From IMG/VR virus record IMGVR_UViG_3300034050_000451, positions 1 to 64,000 of that record: a stretch of DNA of 64,000 nucleotides. One strand, 5' to 3'. Made by a program: the position numbers and the translations under genes. Shown here piece by piece: positions 217 to 23,729 of this stretch; the first letter of the stretch is position 1; each line of letters opens with the position of its first letter. A model generated the notes under the pieces. The model was not told where the DNA came from, ran no database searches, and worked only from the letters and a program-made list of their open reading frames with translations.

Positions 217-245
217 AAAAAAGGGAAAACTTTCGCTTTCCCTTT
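217..245 (-). terminator. rho-independent terminator
   Basis: Minus strand AAAGGGAAAGC-GAAA-GTTTTCCCTTT: 11-bp stem with one GU pair, GNRA loop, then a T run, 25 nt after the stop of 270..869. Confidence 0.8.
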
Positions 246-269: not shown

Positions 270-869
270 TTAAACAATATCTTTCGATTCTATTAATGTA
301 TATGTAAACGATTTACCATGTATTGCACCTGATTTTCTCGTAATAACCATAAATTCTTCAAAATCAGCTGCTTTTTTGAATACTTGACATCCTTCAGACC
401 AATTTTCAACATAAGTTGAATCTGCTCCAGCTTTGTGGATGTTGATACCAAAGATACCTTCTTGGATTTTGGTTTCATCATAGTTCATATCTCTATTAGC
501 ATCTCTATAAACCTTAACCGGCTTTTGTTGTTTAAGTGCTTCGTATTTACCTTGATGTAATCCCAATGTATGTGAACCTCTATATTGACCCGGAACTAAA
601 CGAGCAACTCCAGCTGCATTATGATATTCTTTAACTCCCTTTGTACCAGGGTCGGTTGTGTTTACCCATTCTTTGTAAATCCAATTACCACCATCTTTAT
701 ATGATACTGAAATTGCATCATCAAATACGTTAGTAACCTTTGTACCGGTTGATGAATTTCTGATACCTACGATGTTTAAATCAAATCCTTTGTTAGAAGC
801 ATCTTCAAACCAAACGTATCCTTTTGATTTAACTGCTTTTTCAATTTGTTCTTTTGTGTACTTTGCCAT
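270..869 (-). CDS. L,D-transpeptidase (YkuD)-like cysteine peptidoglycan enzyme
   Basis: GINIHKAGADSTYVENWSEGCQVF fits the H...S-x-G-C catalytic signature of the YkuD fold. No signal peptide. Confidence 0.6.
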   Translation of the reverse strand: MAKYTKEQIEKAVKSKGYVWFEDASNKGFDLNIVGIRNSSTGTKVTNVFDDAISVSYKDGGNWIYKEWVNTTDPGTKGVKEYHNAAGVARLVPGQYRGSHTLGLHQGKYEALKQQKPVKVYRDANRDMNYDETKIQEGIFGINIHKAGADSTYVENWSEGCQVFKKAADFEEFMVITRKSGAIHGKSFTYTLIESKDIV

Positions 870-888
870 AATTTTTTTATTCTGTTTT

Positions 889-897
889 TATAAATAT
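889..897 (-). promoter_or_regulatory. late motif ATATTTATA
   Basis: Exact 9-mer 19 nt upstream of the ATG at 869; the same motif precedes many late genes. Confidence 0.6.
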
Positions 898-901
898 AAC
901 A

Positions 902-2575
902 TTAGTACGAAATTGTTGTACTATTAGAATAACCGGTATTAATTAAGTAGTAATTTGAACTTCCACCACTTGTTGGATTATTTATTATAATTGAGGATGT
1001 TCCTATATAGGTAGGGCGTAAATCAGTAGTTGATGAATTTATTATATTATATTGTGATTGGGTAAATAATCTAACATTTGGTAAAGAATTTTCCCATATA
1101 GATTTCATCCCAACTTTTTTCATATGAATATAATAAACATCAGATACAGTTACTTCACCATCATTATTTACATCGTACTTATAATAATCTAATCCATTAA
1201 ATGAATTACTAATAACTTTGTACATTATAGAATTAATATCACTGGTACTTAGTTGTGTTGTAGGTGTTGGAATATCATATTGAATATACCATTCGGTTGC
1301 TGGATTGGTTGATTGAGAAAATGAATAATATCCAGAAGAGTTAGTATAAACTGTTTGATGTAAAACCCATGGAGTAAAATCGTTAATATAATCAAATTCT
1401 ATAACATAAGGTAAAGATGTATTTCCTAAATCATTCCATTTACCACCTGTAACAAATTGTGTATAATCTTCACTGGGTGAGTTATTAGGTTCTCCGGAAT
1501 TCCAATTTGTGTATTGATTTAATTTATATCGATATGCATATAAGTTATATGTTCTATCAATTTCATCGGCTGTTATAGCTCTATTGAATATTTGATAATC
1601 ACCTAATCTAAAATTACCATAAGCTCCAGAACCCATATTAGTAACATCACTTAATCCAAATGCGAAATATTGTCCGTTTCCCGAATACACATACGGAACA
1701 TCTCTAGTAAAATTAGTACTTCCAAAATTTACATTATTTAAATATCCTTTCATTGATGCCCCATCATAAGTAATAGAAACCAAATGCCAAGCGTTTAATG
1801 TAATAGATGTACTTAATTGAGTAATTCCACTACCATTCCAAAATCCAACTCTAAGGGTATTACTTCCAGTGATTTCCATTATTGATTCATGCCAACCTGA
1901 TGTAGGACTACCAACACCTAATTCCGATGATATAACTCCATTTCCGGTTGGATATATCCAAGCCATTATAGTTATTTTATTATTCGAAAATTTGGATGCT
2001 AAATTATTTGTTATTGCGTATTGATTAGTTCCATTGAATGTTAAATATTTCCCACCAGTACTTGAGTATGATGGTGTATTGTATAATGTAGAATTAATAC
2101 CAGATACAATATCAGTTAGTGTGGTTCCTGATGTATAAGAAGAAACATCATAATCAGCAACCAATCCATCAGTTACTTTAGTTTCTGTCCAACGAAATCC
2201 ACCAGCTGCTTCCGAATAAGTATATCCAGAAACTCTATCTTGATAATATCCAATCCAACCAGATGGCCATGTATTAAATAAGAAATTGTTCTCAGCTGAA
2301 TTAGATACGGTAGCTAAGTGACCTCCCATATTTTCACAAGCAACCTTTGCATTAGTCCAAGTCATTGAACCAGTAGAACGATAGTAAGAGTGTCCGTTAT
2401 AATTGGTTTGTGATGTAAACCCAGTAAGAGTTGGTGTAGTACGTTTATATAATTTTACAGCAACATTTTGAGCTGGTAATCCACCCGCATTATACATATA
2501 ACCCGAATATGTAAATGTTTGAGCAAATACAATATTGGATATTATTAATAATAACAGGGTGAGATATCTTCTCAT
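902..2575 (-). CDS. secreted dockerin-bearing lectin: Ig-like domain interrupted by a C-type lectin, itself interrupted by a LamG/ConA-like domain
   Basis: Signal peptide MRRYL...IVFA|Q; the start at 2575 abuts the upstream stop. CTLD halves HSYY..TWTNAKVACENMGGHLATV..WIG and YTNWNSGEPNN..WND. LamG core ITIMAWIYP..WHLVSITYDG..YQIFNRAITADEI. Dockerin YDVNNDGEVTVSD. Confidence 0.75.
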   Translation of the reverse strand: MRRYLTLLLLIISNIVFAQTFTYSGYMYNAGGLPAQNVAVKLYKRTTPTLTGFTSQTNYNGHSYYRSTGSMTWTNAKVACENMGGHLATVSNSAENNFLFNTWPSGWIGYYQDRVSGYTYSEAAGGFRWTETKVTDGLVADYDVSSYTSGTTLTDIVSGINSTLYNTPSYSSTGGKYLTFNGTNQYAITNNLASKFSNNKITIMAWIYPTGNGVISSELGVGSPTSGWHESIMEITGSNTLRVGFWNGSGITQLSTSITLNAWHLVSITYDGASMKGYLNNVNFGSTNFTRDVPYVYSGNGQYFAFGLSDVTNMGSGAYGNFRLGDYQIFNRAITADEIDRTYNLYAYRYKLNQYTNWNSGEPNNSPSEDYTQFVTGGKWNDLGNTSLPYVIEFDYINDFTPWVLHQTVYTNSSGYYSFSQSTNPATEWYIQYDIPTPTTQLSTSDINSIMYKVISNSFNGLDYYKYDVNNDGEVTVSDVYYIHMKKVGMKSIWENSLPNVRLFTQSQYNIINSSTTDLRPTYIGTSSIIINNPTSGGSSNYYLINTGYSNSTTISY

Positions 2576-2576
2576 A

Positions 2577-3026
2577 TTACATTTGGTTAATAGCACTTAT
2601 TAATGATTTTTTTAATGCAGCTGAAAACGCTGATTTTTCAAATGGAATATTTTCATCTTGCAATTCAATAAATGTAGATTTTACATCAGTCTTACTTTCA
2701 CCAATTCCAGTATATACTTTACCATTAATAATTAAATCAACAGTCACAATAGTAACTTTTCTTTTCTTTTCAAATGGTCCAATTGAAATACTTGTTGTAG
2801 GTGCCTCAATACTCTTAACAACAACCATTACTGATTCACCATCTTCACATATACTATATTTTTCAGATAGAATTTCTTCAGTTATTTGTTTAACACCTAA
2901 TGTAAATCTTTTAGGATTTATATTTTCAATTTTAGCAAGACTCTCTACATTTTTAACAGTGTAGCATTTTTGTCCATAAGTTAATGATGTGATTAACATC
3001 AAAGATAGTAATAATAATTTTTTCAT
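2577..3026 (-). CDS. secreted compact CsgG-like protein (paralog of 4603..5322)
   Basis: Signal peptide MKKLLLL..LTYG|Q; likely start 3026. Shares LGV..I..E.L, TG.GE..T.K and F..S...A.KK.L with the CsgG-like gene. Confidence 0.55.
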   Translation of the reverse strand: MKKLLLLSLMLITSLTYGQKCYTVKNVESLAKIENINPKRFTLGVKQITEEILSEKYSICEDGESVMVVVKSIEAPTTSISIGPFEKKRKVTIVTVDLIINGKVYTGIGESKTDVKSTFIELQDENIPFEKSAFSAALKKSLISAINQM

Positions 3027-3027
3027 T

Positions 3028-4245
3028 TTATAAAAGTGCTTTAGCACCAAGTAATACTTGGTAGTTTATAGCATCACTCTTAAATTGTTGAACACCACTA
3101 AAACTGATGTTCATTTTAAATTTCTGAGTTAGCTTGTAATCAATTGCAACAAATGGAACTGCTAATAGTCCCGATTGATACCACATGCCTTCATAATAAT
3201 ATACAAATGGTGAATATACTGTAACAAACATCAATGTAGTACTCATTTTTTTTCCTACATCGAAATTACCAACAACTCCGCCTAAAGTTGATAAACTTTG
3301 GAATTTGGATTCACCAATATTACCAGTAGTATAATTTACTCCCAACGTTGCTGTTATTTTTTTTATTTTATACGATTCCATTATCGATGTTGTATTAAAA
3401 TAATCCTTTTCAAAATTCAACATAGATGAATTTGCAACTATTGATGTTAAGTTTTTACGTCTCCAAGCTGCAAATAGTGTTATACAAGAATTATCAATTG
3501 CAGTAGTATAATTTACCAAAGCCCCTTTAGCAAATGTATTCTCAGTATTTGATGTGATAAAACTCATATTAATTTTAAGTTGTTGTGGTTCATTACCAGA
3601 AGCACTTGATATAGTAACAATATCACCAGTCATCATAATATTACCACGTTTAACAGCTGCTACTTTAGCTTTAACCTGAGATGAATTAGATGATGAAGAT
3701 GATACAGCCTCTTCAGCTTTTTCTTCACCTGTTTTTTCTTCCGATTCTCCTTTTGATTTAGTTGATTGCGATGAACTACCAGATGTACCATTTTTATCAT
3801 CTGATTTATTGCCGTTAGATGCGACTTTTTCATTACTCTGAACTGTACCTTGTATTGCTGAACCAGCTGCTCCACTTATAGATGAAAGTGATGACATGGT
3901 TGACATAACGCTTGTTAACACTGCTATATTATTAGCTGCAACCGTTACATTTAAATTGGTACTTTGTGCTATACCAACACCACCACAAGGGCCGGAACCT
4001 TGCGGATTACTCGCATTAACTTGATTAATCCAACTTTCTAATGCACCGGATTGTAATTGTGTTTGAGTAAAACTTTGAATTTGCCCAGAATATATTAATG
4101 ATACGCTACCATTTGGGCTATTAATAAAAATATCTTTGGATTTTAAGGTACATGGGTCTGTAAATGTATATGAGAACCCTTGTCCTAACACCACCATAGT
4201 AGAGAACAAAAAACTTATTGTTATTAAAAGTTTTTTAATTTTCAT
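3028..4245 (-). CDS. secreted protein with probable C-terminal outer-membrane beta-barrel
   Basis: Signal peptide MKIKK..VVLG|Q; likely start 4245. N-domain with two Cys, Ser/Lys/Glu-rich linker, then about 200 aa of alternating amphipathic strands ending INYQVLLGAKALL. Confidence 0.55.
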   Translation of the reverse strand: MKIKKLLITISFLFSTMVVLGQGFSYTFTDPCTLKSKDIFINSPNGSVSLIYSGQIQSFTQTQLQSGALESWINQVNASNPQGSGPCGGVGIAQSTNLNVTVAANNIAVLTSVMSTMSSLSSISGAAGSAIQGTVQSNEKVASNGNKSDDKNGTSGSSSQSTKSKGESEEKTGEEKAEEAVSSSSSNSSQVKAKVAAVKRGNIMMTGDIVTISSASGNEPQQLKINMSFITSNTENTFAKGALVNYTTAIDNSCITLFAAWRRKNLTSIVANSSMLNFEKDYFNTTSIMESYKIKKITATLGVNYTTGNIGESKFQSLSTLGGVVGNFDVGKKMSTTLMFVTVYSPFVYYYEGMWYQSGLLAVPFVAIDYKLTQKFKMNISFSGVQQFKSDAINYQVLLGAKALL

Positions 4246-4597
4246 CTTGCGAATCCAATGTATTAGATAAAGATACGCCATCCTCTTCATCTACCTTTTG
4301 GATTAACATTTTGTCTCTATCTTCAGAGTTGAACCAATAATCTATAACTTTATTTAAGTTACCAACAAAGGCACCTAATAAAATTAATAACATTTCTTTC
4401 CAGTCTTGTCCAATTTCTACACCAAAAAATACACCAGAGTTGATTCCAACAATAATTAAGGTAAATAACCCTAATATAATTGCGGTAATTCTCCAACGAT
4501 TATTTTGCATTTGTTGCAACATAAAATAGAAACGATTTTTATCATCTACTTTAACATAATCAGATTTACCACCGAAAAATTCACTTATTTTGCCCAT
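4235..4597 (-). CDS. two-TM membrane protein, holin-like
   Basis: Two hydrophobic helices (ITAIILGLFTLIIVGINSGVFFG; MLLILLGAFVG), then IDYWFNS and an acidic tail. Confidence 0.5.
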   Translation of the reverse strand: MGKISEFFGGKSDYVKVDDKNRFYFMLQQMQNNRWRITAIILGLFTLIIVGINSGVFFGVEIGQDWKEMLLILLGAFVGNLNKVIDYWFNSEDRDKMLIQKVDEEDGVSLSNTLDSQDEN

Positions 4598-4602
4598 TAT
4601 AT

Positions 4603-5322
4603 TTAACTTTTAAATATTCCCTTTTTAATCATTTTTGAAACAACTCTAGATGCTCCAGTTTCAAGAGCTTTCTTAGTTGATATACCAATAGTTGATTGGT
4701 TAAATTTAATGTCATCAACACCATCTAATAATGATGCAGTTTTAACTGTACTTGCTTCACCCAAACCACTACCGGTAATAATTTCACCAGTTTCAGCATC
4801 AACGAATCTAACCTGTAAACCCAAACGAGTTGTTTGAGTTGTTTTTGAACCATCAGTCATTTTGATTTGTTCATCTTCGGATACTGAAAAGTCATATACC
4901 TCAATATAAACGAAGTATTTTGCTAAAATAACATTACCCTTCACTTCTATCTTATTACTTGATATACCCTTATCAGATGCCTTATCCTGTGCAATCATTT
5001 TTTGTTTAATCTCCTCACGGTCCTCAGTAAACTTAAATCTATCTGTTGACTCTAAGAATTCTAAAACAATATTAGCAACACCAAGCCCAACTCTCTTATC
5101 CTTTAACTCAGGATACATTTCGTAAAGTTCTTCGTTAATACCAATTTTTAAAACTTGAATTGGTAAAACGATATCACCATCATAGTCACCTACAACTGCA
5201 ATAGATTGTTTTTTTTCAAAATCAGCTTTATATTCTTCGGTTTTAATAGTTCCAATTGTTTGTGCATTACTAACAATAGAAAATAATAAAATTGAAGAAA
5301 TTATTAATATTAATTTTTTCAT
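4603..5322 (-). CDS. CsgG/HfaB-like secretion-channel fold protein
   Basis: Signal peptide ..VSNA|Q. LGVANIVLEFLESTDRFKFTEDRE, AKYFVYIEVYDF, LGLQVRFVDAETGEII and KKALETGASRVV follow the CsgG family layout. No lipobox Cys. Confidence 0.7.
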   Translation of the reverse strand: MKKLILIISSILLFSIVSNAQTIGTIKTEEYKADFEKKQSIAVVGDYDGDIVLPIQVLKIGINEELYEMYPELKDKRVGLGVANIVLEFLESTDRFKFTEDREEIKQKMIAQDKASDKGISSNKIEVKGNVILAKYFVYIEVYDFSVSEDEQIKMTDGSKTTQTTRLGLQVRFVDAETGEIITGSGLGEASTVKTASLLDGVDDIKFNQSTIGISTKKALETGASRVVSKMIKKGIFKS

Positions 5323-5323
5323 A

Positions 5324-5647
5324 TTACCAAGAATCCTCTTCTTTTGGTTTAGCAGGTGCTGCAGCTGGTGCAGGTTTTTCTACAATTGTTTTTTCTTTAA
5401 TAATTGTATTTGTACCACCCGATTGTTTTTGTTGATTAGTGTTATTATTTTGTAGATTGATAATTACAGGTGCAGCTGGAGCAGCTTGTTCTGTTTTAGT
5501 TTCTTCTTTATCATCTCCACCATTAAATAGAGTTGTTGTAACCCAAGTTCCACCTGCTAATACAGCAGTTGATAGAGTTCCAATAATTGTTTTCTTTAAA
5601 CCTGACCAAGTTCCTTCTGATTCGGGTGCGTTTGTTTCTTCTGACAT
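5324..5647 (-). CDS. single-pass membrane protein with Pro/Ala/Asn-rich tail
   Basis: One hydrophobic segment (IIGTLSTAVLAGGTWVTTTLF) followed by a low-complexity tail; 1 nt from the next gene. Confidence 0.6.
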   Translation of the reverse strand: MSEETNAPESEGTWSGLKKTIIGTLSTAVLAGGTWVTTTLFNGGDDKEETKTEQAAPAAPVIINLQNNNTNQQKQSGGTNTIIKEKTIVEKPAPAAAPAKPKEEDSW

Positions 5648-5692
5648 AGTATTGTTTTTTTGTTTAATTTGTTTTGAGTTGATTATAACAAT

Positions 5693-5718
5693 TATGAGGT
5701 CACATTTGTAACCTCATA
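5693..5718 (-). other. intergenic RNA hairpin without a U-tract
   Basis: Minus strand TATGAGGTTAC-AAAT-GTGACCTCATA: 11 bp with one GU pair, immediately after the stop of 5722..7626. Confidence 0.55.
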
Positions 5719-5721
5719 TTA

Positions 5722-7626
5722 TTATCTTAATATAATTTTTTTCGATAGGTTATTGGTAGTTTTTCTAAGAACTGCAACATAAACACCTGGAATTAAGTTA
5801 CCTAAACTAACTTGGTATTGGTAATTACCTTCAGGCATATTATCATTTACTACTACCCTATATTCAATACCATTAAGACCATATACTGATAACCTAACCG
5901 GTCCAAATTCTTTAACTTCAAATTTTACGTTAACATAATCATCAGTTGGGTTAGGGAATATTTGCATACCCTCTATTTCATCAATAGTAACATTTGCCAT
6001 TCTAAATACCTGTATAATACCATTTGTAGGTGTGATACTTAAATCAACACATTGATTGTTACCAGCGTATTTGTTAGTAGTCCAAAGAGGACTTGTACTC
6101 CATTGGTCTTGAGGTCTTTTTGCAATAAATTTTAAAGTTACAACATCATCACCATCTCTTAATGGTTTTATATGTGTACCACTAATATCATATCCACCCC
6201 AAGAAATTTCATTATTATTAGTATTCAAATATGTTAACCAACTTGAAGTAGCTGATTTCGATTCAATTCCTTTAAATTCCAATAGAGTATCGTTGTATTT
6301 TAATCCAAATTGTAATGAACCAACCTCAGTACCATTTGTTAATACCTTTACAGGTATATTAACTAAATTACCTTCCTGAACTGATAATGTTGGAACATTT
6401 ACTTCAATTGAAGTTGTTGGAAAATCATATTCTACCCTAGCATCAATTACATTGTAAATTTGAGATGGAACGCCAGGTTGTGGTCCTACTAAAACCTCAA
6501 TTGGAGTAATACGTGCCATACGATATCCCGTTCCATTTGCATCACCCGGTACTAATACATAGAATGTAACCGAATCAGGTTGTCCAGCAACAATATTAAA
6601 CGTAAAGTTAGTTACACCAGGAATTGTTGATGTATAATTGGTTGTTGAGCCATTAATAGTAGTATATTCAGATTGTGTAAAGAATTTTACATTTTGAACA
6701 CTATTAGGCCATGCGGTGAATCTACCAGAAATTCTACCAAATATACCATATGCATCCGATATACTTAAACCATTATCACCATTAACATCCGATGCGTAAA
6801 AATCAAATCCAGTTGGTGCTTGTGTACCTAATACATAATCTTGTACTCTTTGTGCATCTGCCGTAGATATTACATTACCAACTGATAACGTATCTCCCTG
6901 TATTTTTAATCTAACATCATAACCAGTTGTATCAATTGCAATTGCATTAAATGCAAAGTCACCATTTATATCAGTCATATCAGTTGTAACCTGAGTCCAA
7001 GCTCCACTTGGTCTAAGTTTCTTTTCTAAAGCTACAGTTAAATTCTTAGCAGCTGTTCCAGTTACGTTCTTAAATTTACCATGATAAGACATTGTTTGAG
7101 GTATAATATTACCACCAAAGTTTTGTAATGTAAGTGCGTTATCCATACCATTTTGCTTTGATGCAATTGCTGGATAAGTTACCGCTCCAAATGACATATC
7201 AGCAATAGTTGATAATGATGCAAATCCAGCTACGTGAGTTAATTTCAACTGAACAATTGGTCCATTTGGAATTTCAAAAGTAGATGAACTACCAGTATAA
7301 GTCATTGTGACAGTTACATAACCAGCAGCCGGATTATCAACATATTTTAGGTTCTGAGAAAATGTTGTATTCAATGTAGTAAGTGTGTCTACCCCAGTGA
7401 AAGCTTGTGTATCATAATAAACTCTAAACTGAAATGCTGTTATATCAGTTGTTGTATTGTTGTAAAAACATAGTCCTACATTAGTATAACCTTCAGCTAC
7501 CGTACCAGCTAAATAATTTGAATCAAGTGTTATAAAAACACCAGAAGTTGTTGGCGTTGGGCAAGTTTGTGAATACCCAAAGATTGGTACTAATGATACC
7601 AGCAGTAAAAATAATAGTTTTTTCAT
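5722..7626 (-). CDS. T9SS-cargo scaffold: cohesin - Ig - dockerin - cohesin - Por secretion C-terminal sorting domain
   Basis: Signal peptide ..FGYS|Q. Cohesin-like ITAFQFRVYYD and VNIPVKV..VGSLQFGLKYNDTLLEF..ISWGG. Dockerin ISTADA..ASDVNGDNGLSISDA. Type-A CTD IFPNPT..VYGLNG..LIPGVYVAVL..SKKIILR. Confidence 0.8.
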   Translation of the reverse strand: MKKLLFLLLVSLVPIFGYSQTCPTPTTSGVFITLDSNYLAGTVAEGYTNVGLCFYNNTTTDITAFQFRVYYDTQAFTGVDTLTTLNTTFSQNLKYVDNPAAGYVTVTMTYTGSSSTFEIPNGPIVQLKLTHVAGFASLSTIADMSFGAVTYPAIASKQNGMDNALTLQNFGGNIIPQTMSYHGKFKNVTGTAAKNLTVALEKKLRPSGAWTQVTTDMTDINGDFAFNAIAIDTTGYDVRLKIQGDTLSVGNVISTADAQRVQDYVLGTQAPTGFDFYASDVNGDNGLSISDAYGIFGRISGRFTAWPNSVQNVKFFTQSEYTTINGSTTNYTSTIPGVTNFTFNIVAGQPDSVTFYVLVPGDANGTGYRMARITPIEVLVGPQPGVPSQIYNVIDARVEYDFPTTSIEVNVPTLSVQEGNLVNIPVKVLTNGTEVGSLQFGLKYNDTLLEFKGIESKSATSSWLTYLNTNNNEISWGGYDISGTHIKPLRDGDDVVTLKFIAKRPQDQWSTSPLWTTNKYAGNNQCVDLSITPTNGIIQVFRMANVTIDEIEGMQIFPNPTDDYVNVKFEVKEFGPVRLSVYGLNGIEYRVVVNDNMPEGNYQYQVSLGNLIPGVYVAVLRKTTNNLSKKIILR

Positions 7627-7646: not shown

Positions 7647-7655
7647 TATAAATAT
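7647..7655 (-). promoter_or_regulatory. late motif ATATTTATA for the secretion operon
   Basis: 20 nt upstream of the ATG at 7626. Confidence 0.6.
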
Positions 7656-7704: not shown

Positions 7705-8160
7705 ATGAAACTGATTCTACTTTTAATTAATTTTTTATTTGTGTTTGATTGTTACTCACAAATTAAAATCGATGATGTTGGTGATAATTGGAAAGCAAAG
7801 GTAGCTACTTCATTATCACTAATAAAACAAGTTGACCCTAATAAATATGAATTAATTAATGATGTATGTAAACATATCACCTATTGGGATGGTGATTTTT
7901 CAACAACAGAAGATTCAGTTACCATAATGATATCCCAAAAAGATATGAGGTTTAATTCAATAAATAACATAGCAGCTATATTAGTGCATGAATCTAAACA
8001 TTTATTTTATTTAAAGCATAACATAAAATTACCTCCGAATTATGAGGAAATATTAGCATATCATTATGAATTGGAATTCCTATCAAAAATACCTAATGTA
8101 GAACCTTGGTTGGTTAACAACGCACTTAAGAATATAGAATATTATGGTTTAGTTAAATAA
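7705..8160 (+). CDS. secreted zincin metallopeptidase-like protein
   Basis: Signal peptide ..DCYS|Q; AAILVHESKH (HExxH) followed by EEILAY, a possible third ligand Glu. Confidence 0.65.
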   Translation: MKLILLLINFLFVFDCYSQIKIDDVGDNWKAKVATSLSLIKQVDPNKYELINDVCKHITYWDGDFSTTEDSVTIMISQKDMRFNSINNIAAILVHESKHLFYLKHNIKLPPNYEEILAYHYELEFLSKIPNVEPWLVNNALKNIEYYGLVK

Positions 8161-8173
8161 ACCAACCCCCATA

Positions 8174-8995
8174 TTACTTTAATAAGTTATAGTATTCTTT
8201 GAAGTGTTTGATTCTATCAGCTAATCCAATAGTACCACCATTTACTCTTTTAGTTACCGATGTTACAGTAGCATCATCAAAACCTTTATCACAAATAGAC
8301 CAAAGTTTATTTGAATCAAAGAAAAATGCAGCAGAAGCTAATGGATATTTAGTTGCTACCAAATCAGGATTTGCAACAGTATCTTCACCAATGAATTTAG
8401 CGAAGTTAGTATAGTTAGATTTACCAGTTAATTGAATATAACCACGTCCACGAAATTTAAATCCGTCTTTAGATGCTTCATCACCATTACCCATTCTTGA
8501 TGCGTAAACTTTAGATGCAATCTTTTCAGGGTTTCTAGCATATGCAGCTGCAGTTGTTGAATTAAAGTATTTTCCGAAGATTTTTACTAATCCATCTGCT
8601 GAATAGTTAACATTCTCAGTAACGGCTTTGAATCCACCACTTTCGTGTCCACATTGTGCTAAGAAATGAGCTAATCTTAGAGGAGTTGTAATATTGAATT
8701 TAGAAGCAGTGTCTGGAATTTGAGCAATTACAGAATCAGGAACGTGTCCTTTAAGAGCTGCCAATTTAAATGAAGATGCTGGTACAGCAACAGAAGGAGT
8801 TGGAGTACTTGCACCCAATCCCATCTTTTCCCAAGTAGCATCACCAACGATACCATCAGCAGTTAATCCATTTTTTGTTTGCCAAGCTTTTACAGCTGAT
8901 TCAGTACCAGCACCAAAAACTCCATCAGCGGTTAAACCTAATTTTGCTTGTAATTTTTTTACATTTTCGTTATTATCACCTTTTTTAACTAACAT
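8174..8995 (-). CDS. endolysin: N-terminal peptidoglycan-binding domain plus glycoside hydrolase family 19
   Basis: VKAWQTKNGLTADGIVGDATW (PG_binding_1); RLAHFLAQCGHESGGF, FRGRGYIQLTGKSNY and TKRVNGG (GH19). Confidence 0.9.
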   Translation of the reverse strand: MLVKKGDNNENVKKLQAKLGLTADGVFGAGTESAVKAWQTKNGLTADGIVGDATWEKMGLGASTPTPSVAVPASSFKLAALKGHVPDSVIAQIPDTASKFNITTPLRLAHFLAQCGHESGGFKAVTENVNYSADGLVKIFGKYFNSTTAAAYARNPEKIASKVYASRMGNGDEASKDGFKFRGRGYIQLTGKSNYTNFAKFIGEDTVANPDLVATKYPLASAAFFFDSNKLWSICDKGFDDATVTSVTKRVNGGTIGLADRIKHFKEYYNLLK

Positions 8996-9017: not shown

Positions 9018-9413
9018 TTATTTTTTAAAATGACCGGAATCTATAATTTTAAAGTCATTTCCATTTCTATCTATCATTTGGTAGTGAGCTTCTATCAACC
9101 CAAACCATTCATCTATATGATTTAATACTTGAGTTGCAGTAAAATCTGAACAACTATATAAATCAAATTGGAACATTGGTGGATTATCATTATCCCAAAC
9201 GTGAATACTAGCATGCGATGTTGCTAATGTTACTGTTCCCGTTATTCCTTCGTTGCCCGGTTCGTTAACATAAACCGATGTAGGACCGGCAACTACTTTC
9301 ATTCCTACTTTATTAACTAATTCACTAAACCAAACGTTTAGTATTTTTTCCGTTTGAGGTGGAGTTTTAATGCTTCCCTTTACAAGTAAATGTAAATGAT
9401 TTGGTATAAACAT
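9018..9413 (-). CDS. speD: S-adenosylmethionine decarboxylase proenzyme family (pyruvoyl-dependent)
   Basis: HLHLLVKG; GITGTVTLATSHASIHVW..FQFDLYSCSDF. The self-cleavage site reads T-SH rather than E-SH. Confidence 0.85.
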   Translation of the reverse strand: MFIPNHLHLLVKGSIKTPPQTEKILNVWFSELVNKVGMKVVAGPTSVYVNEPGNEGITGTVTLATSHASIHVWDNDNPPMFQFDLYSCSDFTATQVLNHIDEWFGLIEAHYQMIDRNGNDFKIIDSGHFKK

Positions 9414-11951: not shown

Positions 11952-13217
11952 TTAAAGTTTCGAGTAATCAGTTCCCCAGCTAGCATTAATGGGGAATCCA
12001 CCACCTTCAGCTATCTCTTTTAACTTTTTAGCTTGAGATACATCGGAATTAGCAGGATATGAAAATAAGAATGAATCGTATGTGTATAGGGAAAGTTCTA
12101 TATCGGTATCTTTGATAAATTCCAATATTTTAGCTACCCTTTCCATATTTAATTCGGTTTCGGTCGCTTGAAGTAGGTAGTTGAACAATTTTTGCGGATT
12201 GTTTCCTTCAATCCAATCTAAGGGGATTCTCCTATGTTGTGTTTGAAGATATCCAGCTTTGGTACTCTTATCCCACAACTTCTCAATGAACTCCTTAACA
12301 CCCTTATAATAAGGTATTTGCTCAAACTCCTCAGGTATACCACCATATAGTAATTGGAACGTAATTCCTTTACCCTCACCATACTCACAACCATATTGGT
12401 CAGCTAACCATTGGTGTACGGATGTTTTGGGTAATTCGTAACCAATCAACTTACCAATAATACGTGGATGATACGCATCATAATCCATTTGTAGGAATAT
12501 GTGGTTTGGTTTTGGGATAAACACCTCTCTCGTACCATCGGATTTGTTTAGGGCAGAGAAGTTGATTCCACCAAATCGGTTGGATGGACGGGATGTAATG
12601 GTGTATGGGTTGTATTGGGTGTAAACGATATCGTTGTGTAAATGTTTAGAAGCTTGAGGCCATCTATCAAGAAATTTTTCCCTATCGACCCGAACACCAA
12701 AATGTTCTATATCTGAAAGAAGGGGAATCATCGAATCTCCAACCCAATCATTCTCTATACCAATAGTAAAAGTAGAAGATATCACTCTAAGATACTCACC
12801 CCATTTCATAATAGGTGCTATCTTGCCCAAATTATCTCGTATACCTCTTCGGGTATAGTGAGTTATAAATGGTTGGTCCTCAAAACCTATCGGATATAAT
12901 TTATTGTGTTGAAAAAATGCATCAGATTGTAAATCATTTAGGTTTTGTAAACCCAAATTACATTGAAGTAATCCCTTTTTGTTGATTACCCATTTTGCTT
13001 CCTTAGAAGTAGTCAAATCAATCGTAGGAGTCTTACAATCAATATGGTTAAATGGTACAATAAAGTCCTTATCATCAAATCTAACATATAGAAATGATAA
13101 TTTGTTATGTATAGGATGCTTTTCCAAATCAGACCATATTGGAATGATTATGGATGTCTTAGTATTCCATAAATTTAAAAACTCCGTTACTTCAGTTTGT
13201 GACTCTACTATAACCAT
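11952..13217 (-). CDS. compact, divergent family A DNA polymerase-like protein
   Basis: TITSRPSNRFGGINF; motif A QMDYDAYHPRII; motif B KGITFQLLYG; motif C LYTYDSFLF; C-terminal FPINASWGTDY. Confidence 0.8.
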   Translation of the reverse strand: MVIVESQTEVTEFLNLWNTKTSIIIPIWSDLEKHPIHNKLSFLYVRFDDKDFIVPFNHIDCKTPTIDLTTSKEAKWVINKKGLLQCNLGLQNLNDLQSDAFFQHNKLYPIGFEDQPFITHYTRRGIRDNLGKIAPIMKWGEYLRVISSTFTIGIENDWVGDSMIPLLSDIEHFGVRVDREKFLDRWPQASKHLHNDIVYTQYNPYTITSRPSNRFGGINFSALNKSDGTREVFIPKPNHIFLQMDYDAYHPRIIGKLIGYELPKTSVHQWLADQYGCEYGEGKGITFQLLYGGIPEEFEQIPYYKGVKEFIEKLWDKSTKAGYLQTQHRRIPLDWIEGNNPQKLFNYLLQATETELNMERVAKILEFIKDTDIELSLYTYDSFLFSYPANSDVSQAKKLKEIAEGGGFPINASWGTDYSKL

Positions 13218-13221
13218 CCTA

Positions 13222-13253
13222 CAAATATACGAAAATTATTTGAATTTACCAAA
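13222..13253 (-). promoter_or_regulatory. Bacteroidota-type promoter for the polymerase-like gene
   Basis: TTTG-GTAAATTCAAATAATTTTCG-TATATTTG, 20-nt spacer. Confidence 0.75.
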
Positions 13254-14213
13254 TTTATTAGATATTTGTTTTATTTTAAAGATATAATTTGAAAAATAGT
13301 GCTGATGTGCTGATGTTATACTACCTTCATTAAAATTTCCATCTAATTTAGGTAGATATATGTTGGATTGAAATCCTTCAGTTCTTAAATAGTCAACTTT
13401 ATCTCTGATATGGAATATATCGTTCCACAAATCAGTTCCATTTACTTTTAAACCAGTATCAGTTACCCTACCTTCATTATGTACTCTAGCATAAGTCAAA
13501 ATTCGTTTTATTGAAGTGTGTGCTAATCCTAAATAATCTAAACTACCCATAACTTCCAAATCATCAACGAAATTAGAAGTTACATCAAATTTATCGATTA
13601 CTTTTAGTAAAGATGAGGTTCTCATTACATATGTGTGATAAATGCACATAATATTTGCTTTACTACAATGAATTATAGATGTAAAATGCTTTGGTTCATC
13701 ATAATAGTTAGTTGTCCAACTCCAAGGATGAGTCCAAGGGTGATTATTAGGAATTGTATATGCTGTCCATAAATCTCTTGTCTTTGGGGCCTCTAATGGA
13801 GTTTGAGTTTGATTTATTTGTTGTAATGTAGTATTCTCAAAGAATACAGCTGAACCATATGAGAAATCTAACTCAGTATGTTGTGTATATGTGTTTGATA
13901 AGTACTCTAATGTATCTTCTGCCAATAAATCATCATCATCCAATCGTACAATCAATTCACCATTAGCAAGTTTTACTCCAATTTTCCAAGAATTCTTAAA
14001 TAAATCGTATGGAGTATTTGATGTGTGGTATAAAACATCATTTTTAGGATTTTGTGATTTAAAATCTTTATAAATGTTAAAATTAACATCAGATGCTGAA
14101 TCATCAAAAATAATAACCTCCCAATTCGTATGAGATTGAAGTTGGACAGATGCCAATGCTTCTTTTAATAAATCAGGTCGGTTGTATGTACGAACTATAA
14201 CACTTATTTTCAC
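13236..14213 (-). CDS. family 2 (GT-A) glycosyltransferase
   Basis: KISVIVRTYNRPDLLKEALASV..WEVIIFDDSASD..GELIVRLDDDD; GTG start. Confidence 0.9.
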   Translation of the reverse strand: MKISVIVRTYNRPDLLKEALASVQLQSHTNWEVIIFDDSASDVNFNIYKDFKSQNPKNDVLYHTSNTPYDLFKNSWKIGVKLANGELIVRLDDDDLLAEDTLEYLSNTYTQHTELDFSYGSAVFFENTTLQQINQTQTPLEAPKTRDLWTAYTIPNNHPWTHPWSWTTNYYDEPKHFTSIIHCSKANIMCIYHTYVMRTSSLLKVIDKFDVTSNFVDDLEVMGSLDYLGLAHTSIKRILTYARVHNEGRVTDTGLKVNGTDLWNDIFHIRDKVDYLRTEGFQSNIYLPKLDGNFNEGSITSAHQHYFSNYIFKIKQISNKFGKFK

Positions 14214-22183: not shown

Positions 22184-22378
22184 CGATTGTTGTTGTGCTT
22201 TTTTATGTTCTTCGGATTCTTTCTTTTTTAACTCAATTAATTTGTTAAAATAGAATTTTCTCCATTGTGATGGCATGAAATACACATCATTCCAGCTGAA
22301 TCCATTACCATAATTAACCAACTCCCAAATTTGAGTATGGAGTTGAATACTATAATCACTCGGTAGGGTAAAAAAAGT
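22163..22378 (-). CDS. unannotated +1-frame extension of the tail assembly chaperone (GT-like product)
   Basis: 71 sense codons (TFFTLPSDYSIQLHTQIWELVNYGNGFSWNDVYFMPSQWRKFYFNKLIELKKKESEEHKKAQQQSKVRIKR) starting right after an in-frame TAA, at the U7 run near the end of 22356..23129. Confidence 0.7.
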   Translation of the reverse strand, partial: TFFTLPSDYSIQLHTQIWELVNYGNGFSWNDVYFMPSQWRKFYFNKLIELKKKESEEHKKAQQQSKVRIKR

Positions 22379-23129
22379 TTATCCCAAATGGGATATCTAG
22401 CGCCTCCGTTTCGCCTGTTACATCTGATGTGAAATCAAATTTTAAATCCATATCCGGACTTAACTCCTTAACATATTTTCTAAATGCCTTAGTATCCAAT
22501 GCAAGGAATCCATTTTGAATCCAGCTTGTAACAAACCCTTTATCTTCATTTCCATCAACAGATTGTATCATATATTTCAAACGAGTAGTAACATCAAATG
22601 TTTTTTCTCCCTTTCCTTTATATAATCTTTCTAATGCTTGAATTTCTTTTGTAATTTCAGTTTCATCACCGTGTGTTAGTAATTTAAATACCAACTCTTT
22701 ACCTGATTTTGGTAATTTGAATTTATATCTATTTTCACCATTTAATAGAGATTCATTAACATCTTTAGTTTTCACCTTAGATAAATCAATTGTTACTGAT
22801 TGTTTTTCCAATGTAAATGGGTCAGTAATTTCAACAGTATAATCAGCCCCATAACCTAATACTCTTGTTGCCATTAAAATTGCGTTTTTATCTCCAATAA
22901 ATACATCGTTGATATTAACACCTTCTTCAACAACAATAGATTCGAATAATTTATCCAATACCACACCTTTTTTAATTAAAGTTTGTGATGCAAGGATATC
23001 TTCTTCTCTAGCTGTCATGTATTTGATTTCAATGTTACCCTTTCTTAATGGGTGTTTTTCGGGATACACTAACCCCTTTGATGGTAAATCAATAATTTCC
23101 GTTGGGAAATCGAATTTAGTATTGCTCAT
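22356..23129 (-). CDS. tail assembly chaperone / T4 gp26-like baseplate hub assembly protein
   Basis: IDLPSKGLVYP..IEIKYMTAREEDIL..GDKNAILMATRVLGYG; lies between tube and tape measure; ends IPFGINFF. Confidence 0.75.
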   Translation of the reverse strand: MSNTKFDFPTEIIDLPSKGLVYPEKHPLRKGNIEIKYMTAREEDILASQTLIKKGVVLDKLFESIVVEEGVNINDVFIGDKNAILMATRVLGYGADYTVEITDPFTLEKQSVTIDLSKVKTKDVNESLLNGENRYKFKLPKSGKELVFKLLTHGDETEITKEIQALERLYKGKGEKTFDVTTRLKYMIQSVDGNEDKGFVTSWIQNGFLALDTKAFRKYVKELSPDMDLKFDFTSDVTGETEALDIPFGINFFYPTE

Positions 23130-23240: not shown

Positions 23241-23729
23241 TTAGAATTCTAAAATTGCGTAATCATAAGCCAATGTCAATTCGATATCAGCTGCATCGTT
23301 TGAATCAAATGATAAATCTCCGAAGTTAGCAGATACAATAAATGCTCCTTTTAACTTCCATTGTTCGATTTTATCACCAACAGGCCCTAGCATATAGAAA
23401 TCGATGTCCTTTTTATAGAAATCGGCGTAACCTTTTCTACCAGTTAACGATTCATATCCTAAACGAACCCATTCCATTACTTGTTGTGCTCCAGATGGAA
23501 CGATTGGGTCATACAATGTTATTGTAATGTCCTGCCATTCTCCCTTACCTTGCAATTTGCGATAAGTGTTGATATGGTCTAGTTTAACCGGTTCGAAAGT
23601 GATAGATGGTCTAGCCGCTGATTTTATTAAGTAAGATTGAATTCCGTCAATCTCCATAATATAGCGGTTCTTCATCTTCGGTTCGAAGTTGGTAAACATC
23701 ATTTGTGAAAATTCTAATACTTCTGCCAT
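23241..23729 (-). CDS. gp19: tail tube protein (T4 gp19-like)
   Basis: FEPKMKNRYIMEI..SAARPSI..WQDITITLYD..VMEW..EQWKLKGAF..ANFGDLSF..IELTLAYD. Confidence 0.9.
   Translation of the reverse strand: MAEVLEFSQMMFTNFEPKMKNRYIMEIDGIQSYLIKSAARPSITFEPVKLDHINTYRKLQGKGEWQDITITLYDPIVPSGAQQVMEWVRLGYESLTGRKGYADFYKKDIDFYMLGPVGDKIEQWKLKGAFIVSANFGDLSFDSNDAADIELTLAYDYAILEF

Follow-up and report, generated by a model that had tools for sequence, protein, structure and literature searches.

The gene block and its predicted products

We analysed a window of 64,000 nucleotides from the IMG/VR virus record IMGVR_UViG_3300034050_000451, which derives from a large Flavobacterium-type phage and encodes tail sheath, tube and hub proteins. 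At positions 902-7626 seven co-directional genes (g1 to g7) lie on the minus strand. The spacing is 74 nt between g1 and g2, 1 nt between g2 and g3 and 5 nt between g3 and g4, while the remaining genes overlap or abut. The features of the block and its flanks are as follows.

7647..7655 (-), promoter-like motif ATATTTATA, 20 nt upstream of the g1 start
5722..7626 (-), g1, scaffold of 634 aa: signal peptide, Coh1, Ig-like, dockerin-like, extension, Coh2, T9SS type-A C-terminal domain (CTD)
7102..7569 (-), g1 Coh1 (residues 20-175), divergent cohesin-like domain
6637..6876 (-), g1 dockerin-like EF-hand module (residues 251-330), followed by a conserved extension at 6427-6636
5992..6414 (-), g1 Coh2 (residues 405-545), cohesin
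5725..5961 (-), g1 T9SS type-A C-terminal sorting domain (residues 556-634)
5693..5718 (-), conserved stem-loop directly after the g1 stop codon
5324..5647 (-), g2, 107 aa: N-terminal membrane anchor, Pro/Ala-rich stretch, conserved acidic C-terminus ending in W
4603..5322 (-), g3, CsgG-superfamily protein of 239 aa: signal peptide, no lipobox Cys
4235..4597 (-), g4, 120 aa: hydrophobic segments and an acidic tail (holin-like shape)
3028..4290 (-), g5, 420 aa (probable start at 4245): N-terminal Cys-pair domain (3871-4179), low-complexity linker of variable length, predicted C-terminal 12-strand beta-barrel (3037-3642)
2577..3050 (-), g6, 157 aa (probable start at 3026): short CsgG-fold paralogue of g3 with a conserved Cys pair
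902..2596 (-), g7, 564 aa (probable start at 2575): C-type lectin (2177-2368 and 1382-1558) with LamG inserted (1559-2035), Ig-like, dockerin-like (1022-1261), extension (905-1021), no CTD
270..869 (-), g0, 199 aa: no signal peptide, phrog_3000 (endolysin-related), with its own ATATTTATA at 889-897 and a terminator-like hairpin downstream at 220-245
7705..8160 (+), gx, exported protein of 151 aa with a conserved HESxH motif (putative small zinc metallopeptidase)

To assess the domain content of the scaffold g1, we compared it with profile libraries. Residues 407-540 were firmly identified as a cohesin (Pfam 5.7e-11), and the family profile matched the PDB cohesins 1g1k and 2vn5 over the full length at about 4e-8 (3.7e-8 for 1g1k). 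The sorting domain at the extreme C-terminus was also firm and scored above the curated cutoffs, with PF18962 at 1.9e-9 and TIGR04183 at 4.5e-6 and 26.6 bits against a cutoff of 23. The N-terminal domain Coh1 was only weakly cohesin-like: Pfam Cohesin gave 0.068, the only PDB profile hit was a cohesin (4ums) at 0.15, and hhalign to Coh2 gave an E-value of 0.0047. The dockerin-like module of g1 scored 1.4e-3 and 19.3 bits against Dockerin_1, which is below the gathering cutoff of 22.9, and that of g7 gave an E-value of 0.11. The family profile produced sub-significant hits to the dockerins 4uyp, 5m2o and 6kg9, and only one canonical Ca loop (DxNxDxxxxxxD) is present.

The lectin g7 contains Laminin_G_3 (4e-15) and Lectin_C (3e-9). 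Its predicted sugar site is intact, with EPN at residue 369 and WND at residue 387. It shares the Ig, dockerin-like and extension module with the scaffold (g1 210-366 versus g7 410-560, 31% identity, BLASTP E 1e-13), and these are the only two such modules in the window.

We next examined the remaining proteins of the block. Although the g3 protein itself gave no Pfam CsgG hit, 18 of 37 relatives hit PF03783, its profile matched E. coli CsgG at 2.6e-5, and the top Foldseek hits of its AF2 model (pLDDT 80.6) were all CsgG at about 1e-8. Together these place g3 in the CsgG superfamily by profile and by predicted fold. It is also the most conserved member of the module (mean p-distance 0.24). The g6 protein is a paralogue of g3 at profile level only: hhalign of the g6 alignment against the g3 alignment gave 96.7% and an E-value of 3.5e-10, and the g6 HMM hit g3 at 1.4e-6, while BLASTP found nothing. 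For g5, AF2 predicted 12 strands over residues 217-418, and Foldseek matched this region to KdgM (TM 0.71), followed by NanC, FapF and autotransporter barrels, whereas no Pfam family was found.

In a hydropathy analysis, g1, g3, g5 and g7 scored as having signal-peptide-like N-termini. One hydrophobic segment of g4 scored strongly as transmembrane, while a second, weaker one was judged by eye. The weakly hydrophobic anchor of g2 and the signal peptide of g6, which is present only from its internal ATG, fell below the threshold used and were likewise judged by eye.

The promoter-like motif ATATTTATA occurs 12 times in the window, 11 of them on the minus (coding) strand, against 5.0 expected, and 0 of 100 shuffles reached 12. 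It also lies upstream of the tail sheath, baseplate hub and g0 genes, and an ATATTTAT core recurs upstream of the scaffold gene in relatives. That it marks late expression, as the first-pass annotation had it, is an inference. The stem-loop after g1 has an 11-bp stem and is kept with compensatory changes in the relatives L012-L036. The first-pass annotation had described seven co-directional genes for a T9SS-tagged cohesin scaffold, two membrane proteins, two CsgG-like paralogues, a barrel and an untagged dockerin-lectin, and this observation was confirmed, with the dockerin and Coh1 assignments remaining weak.

Conservation and modularity among relatives

The block is truly phage-borne. It recurs in at least 195 viral contigs, in marine lineages at about 41-45% identity, and in the cultured Flavobacterium phage immuto. 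The gene order g1-g2-g3-g5-g6 is kept in marine and other lineages at about 41-45% g3 identity, with conserved blocks comprising seven to nine genes. By contrast, g4 was detected in 38 of 80 loci and sits at varying positions within the module. The g0 gene travels with the module in several lineages, and gx, which is divergent from g1 here, is co-oriented within the module in other lineages.

To find out whether the scaffold has a regular partner, we counted dockerin-module proteins per locus. Of 67 complete loci, 65 carry exactly one extra dockerin-module protein. Its C-terminal module is constant while its head is swapped between lineages (C-lectin, C-lectin+LamG, PA14, GEVED or unknown). 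The GEPN...WND site is conserved in 35 of 35 lectin heads of non-redundant relatives. In 22 loci the scaffold is naturally split into Coh1-Ig-Doc and Coh2-CTD, each with its own signal peptide, which keeps two cohesins to two dockerin-like modules. These comparative data favour an assembled complex, although the cargo dockerin co-varied only weakly with either cohesin (partial r 0.16 and 0.06).

Comparison with described systems

Coh2 is a sequence-level cohesin, and as in cellulosomes (e.g. the Clostridium cellulolyticum CipC cohesin, PDB 1g1k, and the Acetivibrio ScaB dockerin, 4uyp) a scaffold with two cohesin-type modules sits beside partner proteins with a C-terminal dockerin-like module and variable functional heads. 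Here, however, the genes belong to a phage of a diderm Bacteroidota host, the cargo heads are lectins or glycan binders rather than enzymes, and the anchoring signal is a T9SS CTD rather than SLH or sortase. Moreover, the scaffold itself carries a dockerin-like module, and this module has one canonical Ca loop, a long conserved extension and a score below the Pfam cutoff. The N-terminal Sec signal and type-A sorting domain resemble those of T9SS cargo of Bacteroidota, such as the Flavobacterium johnsoniae lectin-adhesin RemA, and of the phage-encoded cargo of 'Cryophage', which likewise varies between variants (PMC7468147). In our case the tagged protein is a cohesin scaffold and not an enzyme, the variable part is an untagged partner, and the gene is locked into a conserved envelope module of 7-9 genes.

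The g3 protein matches the curli secretion channel CsgG, including an aligned constriction-loop Tyr-Pro, and is a phage copy without curli subunits, as in the published pelagimyophages and the methylophage Melnitz (PMC9004378). It differs in having no lipidation Cys and a shorter, polar hairpin, in the absence of CsgF, CsgE, CsgA or CsgB from the profile search, and in being accompanied by a short paralogue and a 12-strand barrel. A tblastn search of the phage records found homologues only in immuto and not in pelagimyophages. After CsgG, g3 hit PelC, GNA1162 and LptE, and g6 is in the size range of the PelC and LptE chains. In PelC/PelB, LptE/LptD and Caulobacter HfaB, small CsgG/LptE-fold lipoproteins work with an outer-membrane partner, and HfaB serves a surface adhesin anchor. 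Here too both genes are adjacent to a barrel gene, but the similarity is only at fold level and no polysaccharide-export or LPS genes are in the module. The C-terminal domain of g5 superposes on the twelve-stranded KdgM/NanC porins (rmsd 3.8 Å for KdgM), the FapF amyloid exporter, and type V autotransporter and intimin beta-domains. Its order of N-terminal domain, disordered linker and C-terminal barrel resembles FapF and autotransporters. Nevertheless, no sequence family match was found, model confidence is only moderate, and the linker is an extremely length-variable S/N/G/T/Q tract.

The first-pass annotation knew of no such combination in a phage, a statement that needs softening since phage T9SS cargo and phage CsgG are published, and GenBank annotates the immuto homologues as cohesin- and lectin-domain proteins. 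We found no description of the combination itself in the literature searched, and no role for the block has been described.

A putative glycan-binding complex and its alternatives

Our preferred, though tentative, explanation is that the block builds a multivalent glycan-binding complex on or around the infected cell. In this view, the phage would transcribe the block from its own promoter-like motif, and g1 would cross the inner membrane by Sec and be delivered to the cell surface or the medium by the host type IX secretion system through its type-A CTD. Each of its two cohesin-type modules would take one dockerin-like module, one from the scaffold itself (in split lineages, from the separate adaptor protein) and the other from the untagged cargo, whose head here is predicted to be a Ca-dependent, mannose-type (EPN/WND) C-type lectin and elsewhere another glycan-binding domain. 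The CsgG-superfamily proteins g3 and g6, the barrel protein g5 and the small membrane proteins g2 and g4 would form the conserved envelope 'machine', which most likely anchors the complex or helps the untagged parts across the outer membrane. That cultured relatives infect Flavobacterium is consistent with the T9SS tag, but only conserved adjacency ties g2-g6 mechanistically to g1 and g7. What our analysis establishes are the domains, at the strengths given above, the export signals, and the conservation, co-occurrence and modular swapping, whereas cohesin-dockerin binding, the secretion route, localisation and the biological role are inferred.

The interpretation offered by the first-pass annotation was therefore supported in part. 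The phage-encoded, conserved and entirely envelope-targeted nature of the module, the bona fide type-A tag on g1, the dockerin-like module shared with an untagged lectin, and a clip-on assembly (on comparative grounds) are supported. Actual binding, surface anchoring as opposed to release, and export of the lectin through a phage CsgG/barrel channel are not supported by our data. A CsgG-type pore is not assured, since the distal hairpin of g3 is polar, the protein has no lipidation Cys, and the same domain is fused to Ser/Thr kinases (Pkinase) and caspases (Peptidase_C14) in bacteria.

A lysis-related role remains a live rival, although we consider it less likely. The holin-shaped g4, g2 as an inner-membrane anchored and periplasm-spanning protein, g3 and g6 (lipoproteins in relatives) and g5 would then time lysis or breach the outer membrane with the neighbouring endolysin-type genes, while scaffold and lectin would be a linked but functionally separate passenger. 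Consistent with this, a GH19 + PG_binding endolysin (8174-8995) and g0 flank the block, the endolysin directly follows the module in many relatives, and in the relative L094 the g0-like gene precedes it. Furthermore, g0 shares the promoter-like motif, a terminator lies only after g0, no canonical spanin or holin was seen nearby, and published speculation gives phage CsgG a role in regulating lysis (PMC9004378). However, in immuto and the TARA contigs the module sits next to replication genes, with the immuto endolysin about 6 kb away, and g1 stays immediately upstream of g2-g3 across about 41-45% divergence, so it is not a casual neighbour. In addition, g2 appears by eye Pro/Ala-rich and low-complexity rather than obviously coiled-coil, the g3 of this window lacks a lipobox, and g4 is detectable in fewer than half of the loci.

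It is also possible, but in our view unlikely, that T9SS cleaves the CTD and the same complex is shed as a soluble multivalent agglutinin or decoy that coats host-type glycans on neighbouring cells, debris or particles rather than decorating the infected cell. The domain and co-occurrence evidence is shared with the preferred explanation, type-A cargo of Flavobacterium is frequently released rather than anchored, and two cohesins would give multivalency, but the constant presence of g3, g6 and a barrel protein with an exposed-looking N-terminal domain fits an anchor better. More doubtful still is the absence of any docking, in which the shared module is a common stalk inherited by two paralogous exported proteins, g3 and g6 are periplasmic binding or sensor-type domains, and the genes act independently, for example as separate host-takeover or exclusion factors. 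The sub-threshold dockerin and Coh1 scores, the weak covariation, and the kinase- and caspase-fused relatives, together with bacterial homologues next to caspase, TIR and STAND genes, would fit this reading. One cargo per scaffold with only the head swapped, the parity kept in split scaffolds with a signal peptide on each half, and the tightly coupled gene order speak against it.

If the proposed complex is formed, the likely benefit to the phage would be the binding of host-type glycans, either to stick infected cells to neighbours or particles, or to mask receptors on infected cells and debris.

Gene content and domain assignments

The region 902-7626 was confirmed to hold seven minus-strand ORFs of 634, 107, 239, 120, 420, 157 and 564 aa, which we named g1 to g7 in transcription order. 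The gaps are 74 nt (g1-g2), 1 nt (g2-g3) and 5 nt (g3-g4), while the other genes overlap or abut once the likely internal ATG starts of g5, g6 and g7 are used. The window is a tailed phage, and a megablast of 20 kb against INPHARED returned no close DNA match. Besides a fibre-assembly protein, the following features of the window were recorded:

220-245 (-): terminator-like hairpin after g0
270-869 (-): g0, a phrog_3000 protein related to the C-terminal part of an endolysin family, without signal peptide
889-897 (-): copy of the promoter-like motif ATATTTATA belonging to g0
1559-2035 within 902-2596 (-): LamG domain inserted in the lectin fold of g7
5693-5718 (-): stem-loop immediately after the g1 stop codon
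7705-8160 (+): gx, a 151-aa exported protein with a HESxH motif
8174-8995: GH19 + PG_binding endolysin
9018-9413 (-): S-adenosylmethionine decarboxylase homologue, just upstream of the module
11952-13217 (-): 421-aa ORF with only a weak family-A DNA polymerase match, just upstream of the module
13236-14213 (-): family-2 glycosyltransferase, just upstream of the module
22356-23129: baseplate hub
23241-23729: tail tube
23782-26118: tail sheath
26246-38029 (-): giant ORF of 3927 aa with collagen triple-helix repeats and a C-terminal endosialidase-chaperone (S74) domain
40104-52088 (-): giant ORF of 3994 aa
52982-61300 (-): giant ORF of 2772 aa

In parts of the first two giant ORFs the GC content rises from about 0.30 to 0.41-0.45.

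The scaffold protein g1 carries a firm cohesin (Coh2) at residues 407-540 (PF00963, 5.7e-11, 43.2 bits versus a cutoff of 24.1), and a profile of this domain built from relatives hit cellulosomal cohesins in the PDB at about 4e-8 over their full length. Its type-A T9SS sorting domain is equally firm, occupying residues 556-634 of 634 at the extreme C-terminus (PF18962, 38.1 bits versus 27; TIGR04183, 26.6 versus 23), and the N-terminus is hydrophobic, as expected for a Sec signal. The N-terminal domain (Coh1) is only weakly cohesin-like, although three independent weak signals all point to cohesin: a Pfam match at 0.068, a lone PDB hit, which is a cohesin, at 0.15, and an hhalign match to Coh2 with E 0.0047 and a probability of 7%.

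The domain called a dockerin in the first-pass annotation falls below the gathering score of PF00404 in both g1 (19.3 versus 22.9 bits) and g7 (13.1 bits, E 0.11), and a 33-sequence profile of the module found several PDB dockerins at E 0.036 to 2 only. Rather than the two Ca-binding loops of a duplicated F-hand, only the second loop is canonical (D-V-N-x-D-x-x-x-x-x-S-D), while the first is degenerate and lacks the acidic ligands in both scaffold and cargo. We therefore refer to this module as dockerin-like. That g1 and g7 share it is nevertheless real (31% identity over 160 residues, E 1e-13); these are the only two copies in the 64-kb window, and the tail and fibre genes have none.

The cargo protein g7 is a C-type lectin (PF00059, 3e-9, 38 bits versus 22.6; the homologue in Flavobacterium phage immuto scores 3e-15) with a Laminin_G_3 domain (4e-15) inserted inside the lectin fold. 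Relatives of about 332 aa have the uninterrupted lectin, which makes this a domain-insertion polymorphism within one gene family. The classical Ca/sugar motifs are kept, with EPN at 369 and WND at 387, and all 35 non-redundant lectin heads in relatives keep GEPN and WND. Mannose/GlcNAc/glucose-type ligands are predicted from the EPN motif.

Direct Pfam, NCBIfam and PHROG searches of g3, g5 and g6 gave nothing usable, and g3 itself has no Pfam hit. However, of 37 aligned g3 relatives from an exhaustive HMMER search, 18 match Pfam CsgG (PF03783, best 1.9e-17) and 8 match LpoB. The family profile hits E. coli CsgG in the PDB at 2.6e-5, with the near-invariant Tyr-Pro of g3 aligned to the Tyr-Pro of the CsgG constriction loop. 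An AF2 model of g3 (pLDDT 80.6) has CsgG structures as its best Foldseek hits (about 1e-8, TM about 0.55), followed by PelC, FlgT, GNA1162 and LptE. Between g6 and g3 BLASTP found no similarity, but g6 aligns to the g3 family by hhalign (96.7% probability, E 3.5e-10) with an internal deletion, and its plain HMM hits g3 at 1.4e-6. The earlier description of two CsgG-fold paralogues is thus right at profile level. No CsgA, CsgB, CsgE or CsgF was found among the seven proteins by Pfam, NCBIfam or PHROG searches. PDB sequence searches with g3 and g6 as single sequences, with the g5 and g6 profiles, and with g0 and gx gave nothing meaningful, and the S1 and P450 hits obtained for g6 are treated as chance.

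In g5, a conserved N-terminal domain with a Cys pair is followed by a low-complexity S/N/G/T/Q linker, which in relatives ranges from a few tens to several hundred residues, and by a C-terminal beta-rich domain of about 200 aa. AF2 predicts twelve antiparallel strands in this last domain, with a barrel pLDDT that is mostly 70-86 but dips to 48-68 in some blocks, and a whole-protein mean of 60.5. Foldseek matched the prediction to 12-stranded outer-membrane barrels, namely KdgM (TM 0.71), NanC, FapF, and autotransporter and intimin beta-domains. As regards a C-terminal beta-signal, many relatives end in F, whereas the window protein ends in L-L. No sequence family covers g5, and it showed no relation to a bacterial DUF3187 barrel found next to a CsgG-like gene. 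Of the two small proteins, g2 has a weakly hydrophobic N-terminal segment that fell below the scan threshold and was read as an anchor by eye, a Pro/Ala-rich stretch and a conserved acidic C-terminus ending in Trp, while g4 has one strongly hydrophobic segment, a second weaker one judged by eye, and an acidic tail.

Expression signals, distribution and synteny

The motif ATATTTATA occurs 12 times, 11 of them on the coding strand, against 5.0 expected, and none of 100 shuffles reached 12. It lies 20 nt upstream of g1, and also upstream of the tail sheath, the baseplate hub and g0. An ATATTTAT core recurs upstream of the scaffold gene in divergent relatives. Calling it a late promoter, as had been proposed, is inference, and a sigma-70 promoter scan showed no enrichment. 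The 11-bp stem-loop after g1 is conserved with compensatory base changes in the nearer relatives (loci L012-L036). It lacks a T-run and could be an attenuator or an RNA-stability element that sets the expression ratio of g1 to g2-g7. The first clear terminator-like site is the hairpin after g0.

A scan of viral contigs with g3 found at least 195 confirmed loci in IMG/VR, of which 80 were fetched, on contigs of up to 308 kb; the family occurs in freshwater, Baltic and open-ocean samples. Relatives of g3 number 6,485 in the metagenome protein collection. The order g1-g2-g3-(g4)-g5-g6 is kept throughout, while the cargo gene moves between the two ends of the module. The same module occurs in TARA Oceans contigs at 41% g3 identity, and in a 103-kb contig whose g3 homologue belongs to a protein cluster with a representative 45% identical to g3. 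In the TARA contigs of the marine lineage (L084-L086), an Endonuclease_NS gene and a 104-aa ORF are inserted between the scaffold gene and g2, and extra ORFs of 343 and 170 aa lie between g3 and the g5 homologue. The module tolerates insertions without losing its order.

Among deposited phage genomes, only the Flavobacterium phage vB_FspM_immuto isolates (Immutovirus, host Flavobacterium sp. LMO8) carry the module, as gp013-gp019, annotated merely as a lectin C-type protein, a cohesin-domain protein and hypotheticals. Flavobacterium is a genus that possesses a T9SS. A genome scan with the single g3 protein found only two MAG contigs, one Bacteroidetes and one Flavobacterium, which agree on the host group.

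Two neighbours also associate with the module. The conserved HESxH motif of gx, kept in all 22 non-redundant relatives, and a downstream EE..Y.YEL suggest a small zinc metallopeptidase, although gx has no Pfam or PHROG hit. This gene travels with the module, being divergent here but co-oriented within it in the related loci L061, L069 and L094. A g0-like gene adjoins the module in L094, which it directly precedes, and lies near it in loci L063-L080.

Indications of an assembled complex and competing interpretations

To judge whether scaffold and cargo might dock, we compared module composition across loci. Of 67 loci with the complete core, 65 have exactly one further protein carrying the dockerin-like module, one has two, and the one with none is cut by the contig end. 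This protein always keeps the C-terminal Ig + dockerin-like + extension module, while its head varies between C-type lectin, C-type lectin + LamG, PA14, GEVED and unknown domains of up to 770 aa. In 22 loci, including immuto, the scaffold is split into Coh1-Ig-Doc-extension (about 363 aa, no CTD) and Coh2-CTD (about 243 aa), each with its own signal peptide. Fused or split, each genome has two cohesin-type and two dockerin-like modules. This is what a docking system would look like, and it is the strongest, though still indirect, support for the idea that the untagged lectin clips on to the scaffold. A mirror-tree test did not assign partners: the scaffold dockerin-like module tracks Coh2 best (partial r 0.82), but this is confounded by physical linkage, and the cargo module tracks Coh1 at 0.16 and Coh2 at 0.06, which is too weak.

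The observation made in the first-pass annotation therefore stands, whereas its interpretation is supported only in part. The best reading, which we hold tentatively and at somewhat less than even confidence, is an exported, T9SS-routed cohesin scaffold that docks a swappable glycan-binding head. The genes, the domains at the strengths given, their conserved order and the exchange of heads rest on the sequence comparisons, whereas Ca-dependent dockerin-cohesin binding, dependence of secretion on the host T9SS and the role of the complex are inferred. The further claim that the lectin leaves through a phage CsgG/barrel pore is unsupported. The g3 of the window has no cysteine at all, so it cannot be lipidated like CsgG, although many relatives, including L094, have an L-x-G-C lipobox. 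AF2 gives g3 long strands at 136-154, 158-175 and 181-196, but the distal hairpin (146-166) is polar and acidic, and shorter than the aligned E. coli transmembrane hairpin. The same domain occurs at the C-terminus of Ser/Thr kinases and N-terminal to caspase domains. In bacterial-looking metagenome contigs (L090-L093), g3 homologues are paired with a g6-like short paralogue beside Peptidase_C14 (caspase), TIR, nSTAND and WD40 genes, an uncharacterised envelope-facing use of the CsgG fold, possibly in conflict systems. The fold is clearly used for things other than pores. By far the most conserved module member is g3 (mean p-distance 0.24 against 0.46-0.59 for the rest), which suggests that it contacts something invariant.

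A lysis-related role for g2-g6 is less likely than this reading but stays a live rival. The block is flanked by the endolysin and by g0, the endolysin directly follows the module in many relatives, g4 is holin-shaped, and published speculation links phage CsgG to lysis timing (PMC9004378). On the other hand, the module follows replication genes in immuto and the TARA contigs, and g1 is described as never separated from g2-g3 by more than one inserted gene, the two ORFs between the scaffold gene and g2 in L084-L086 notwithstanding. Canonical spanin features were not seen: g2 looks Pro/Ala-rich and low-complexity rather than coiled-coil, by eye only, g3 is 239 aa without a lipobox, and PHROG hits are only marginal. 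Release of the complex rather than its anchoring is somewhat less likely still, and the absence of any docking is the least likely of these alternatives. A role as virion component was considered and rejected, since every module protein has a predicted signal peptide or membrane segment (those of g2 and g6 by eye) and no cohesin or dockerin module occurs in the tail or fibre genes of the window.

Relation to known systems and biological meaning

Phage-borne T9SS cargo has been reported once, as a 'unique occurrence' (PMC7468147), and phage CsgG/CsgF without curli subunits is known, with unknown function, in pelagimyophages and Melnitz (PMC9004378). Dockerin domains on putative archaeal-virus contigs have been linked to adhesion (PMC13452462). 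In the literature searched, we found no description of a phage cohesin scaffold with a T9SS tag, of the swappable dockerin-module cargo, or of this module as a unit.

In a more far-reaching and improbable view, the 7-9 genes would form one self-contained, phage-built envelope apparatus. Inner-membrane proteins g2 and g4, a CsgG-like ring (g3/g6) and a 12-strand barrel (g5) would export and/or anchor the parts that lack a T9SS tag, while the host T9SS would deliver the cohesin scaffold. Together they would coat the infected Flavobacterium with an exchangeable lectin head, and this coat would capture neighbouring host cells or particles ('sibling capture') or mask the phage's own glycan receptor. 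If so, it would be a widespread strategy in very abundant freshwater and marine Bacteroidota phages.

The module is abundant in nature, and a cultured phage-host pair carrying it exists in vB_FspM_immuto and Flavobacterium sp. LMO8. As these phages have no recognised spanins, part of the block may be their outer-membrane step in lysis. If they decorate or surround infected Flavobacteriia with a swappable lectin complex, this changes how infected cells stick to each other and to particles, which matters for particle-attached carbon turnover. It would also be a phage 'auxiliary' function that acts on cell-surface architecture rather than on metabolism.
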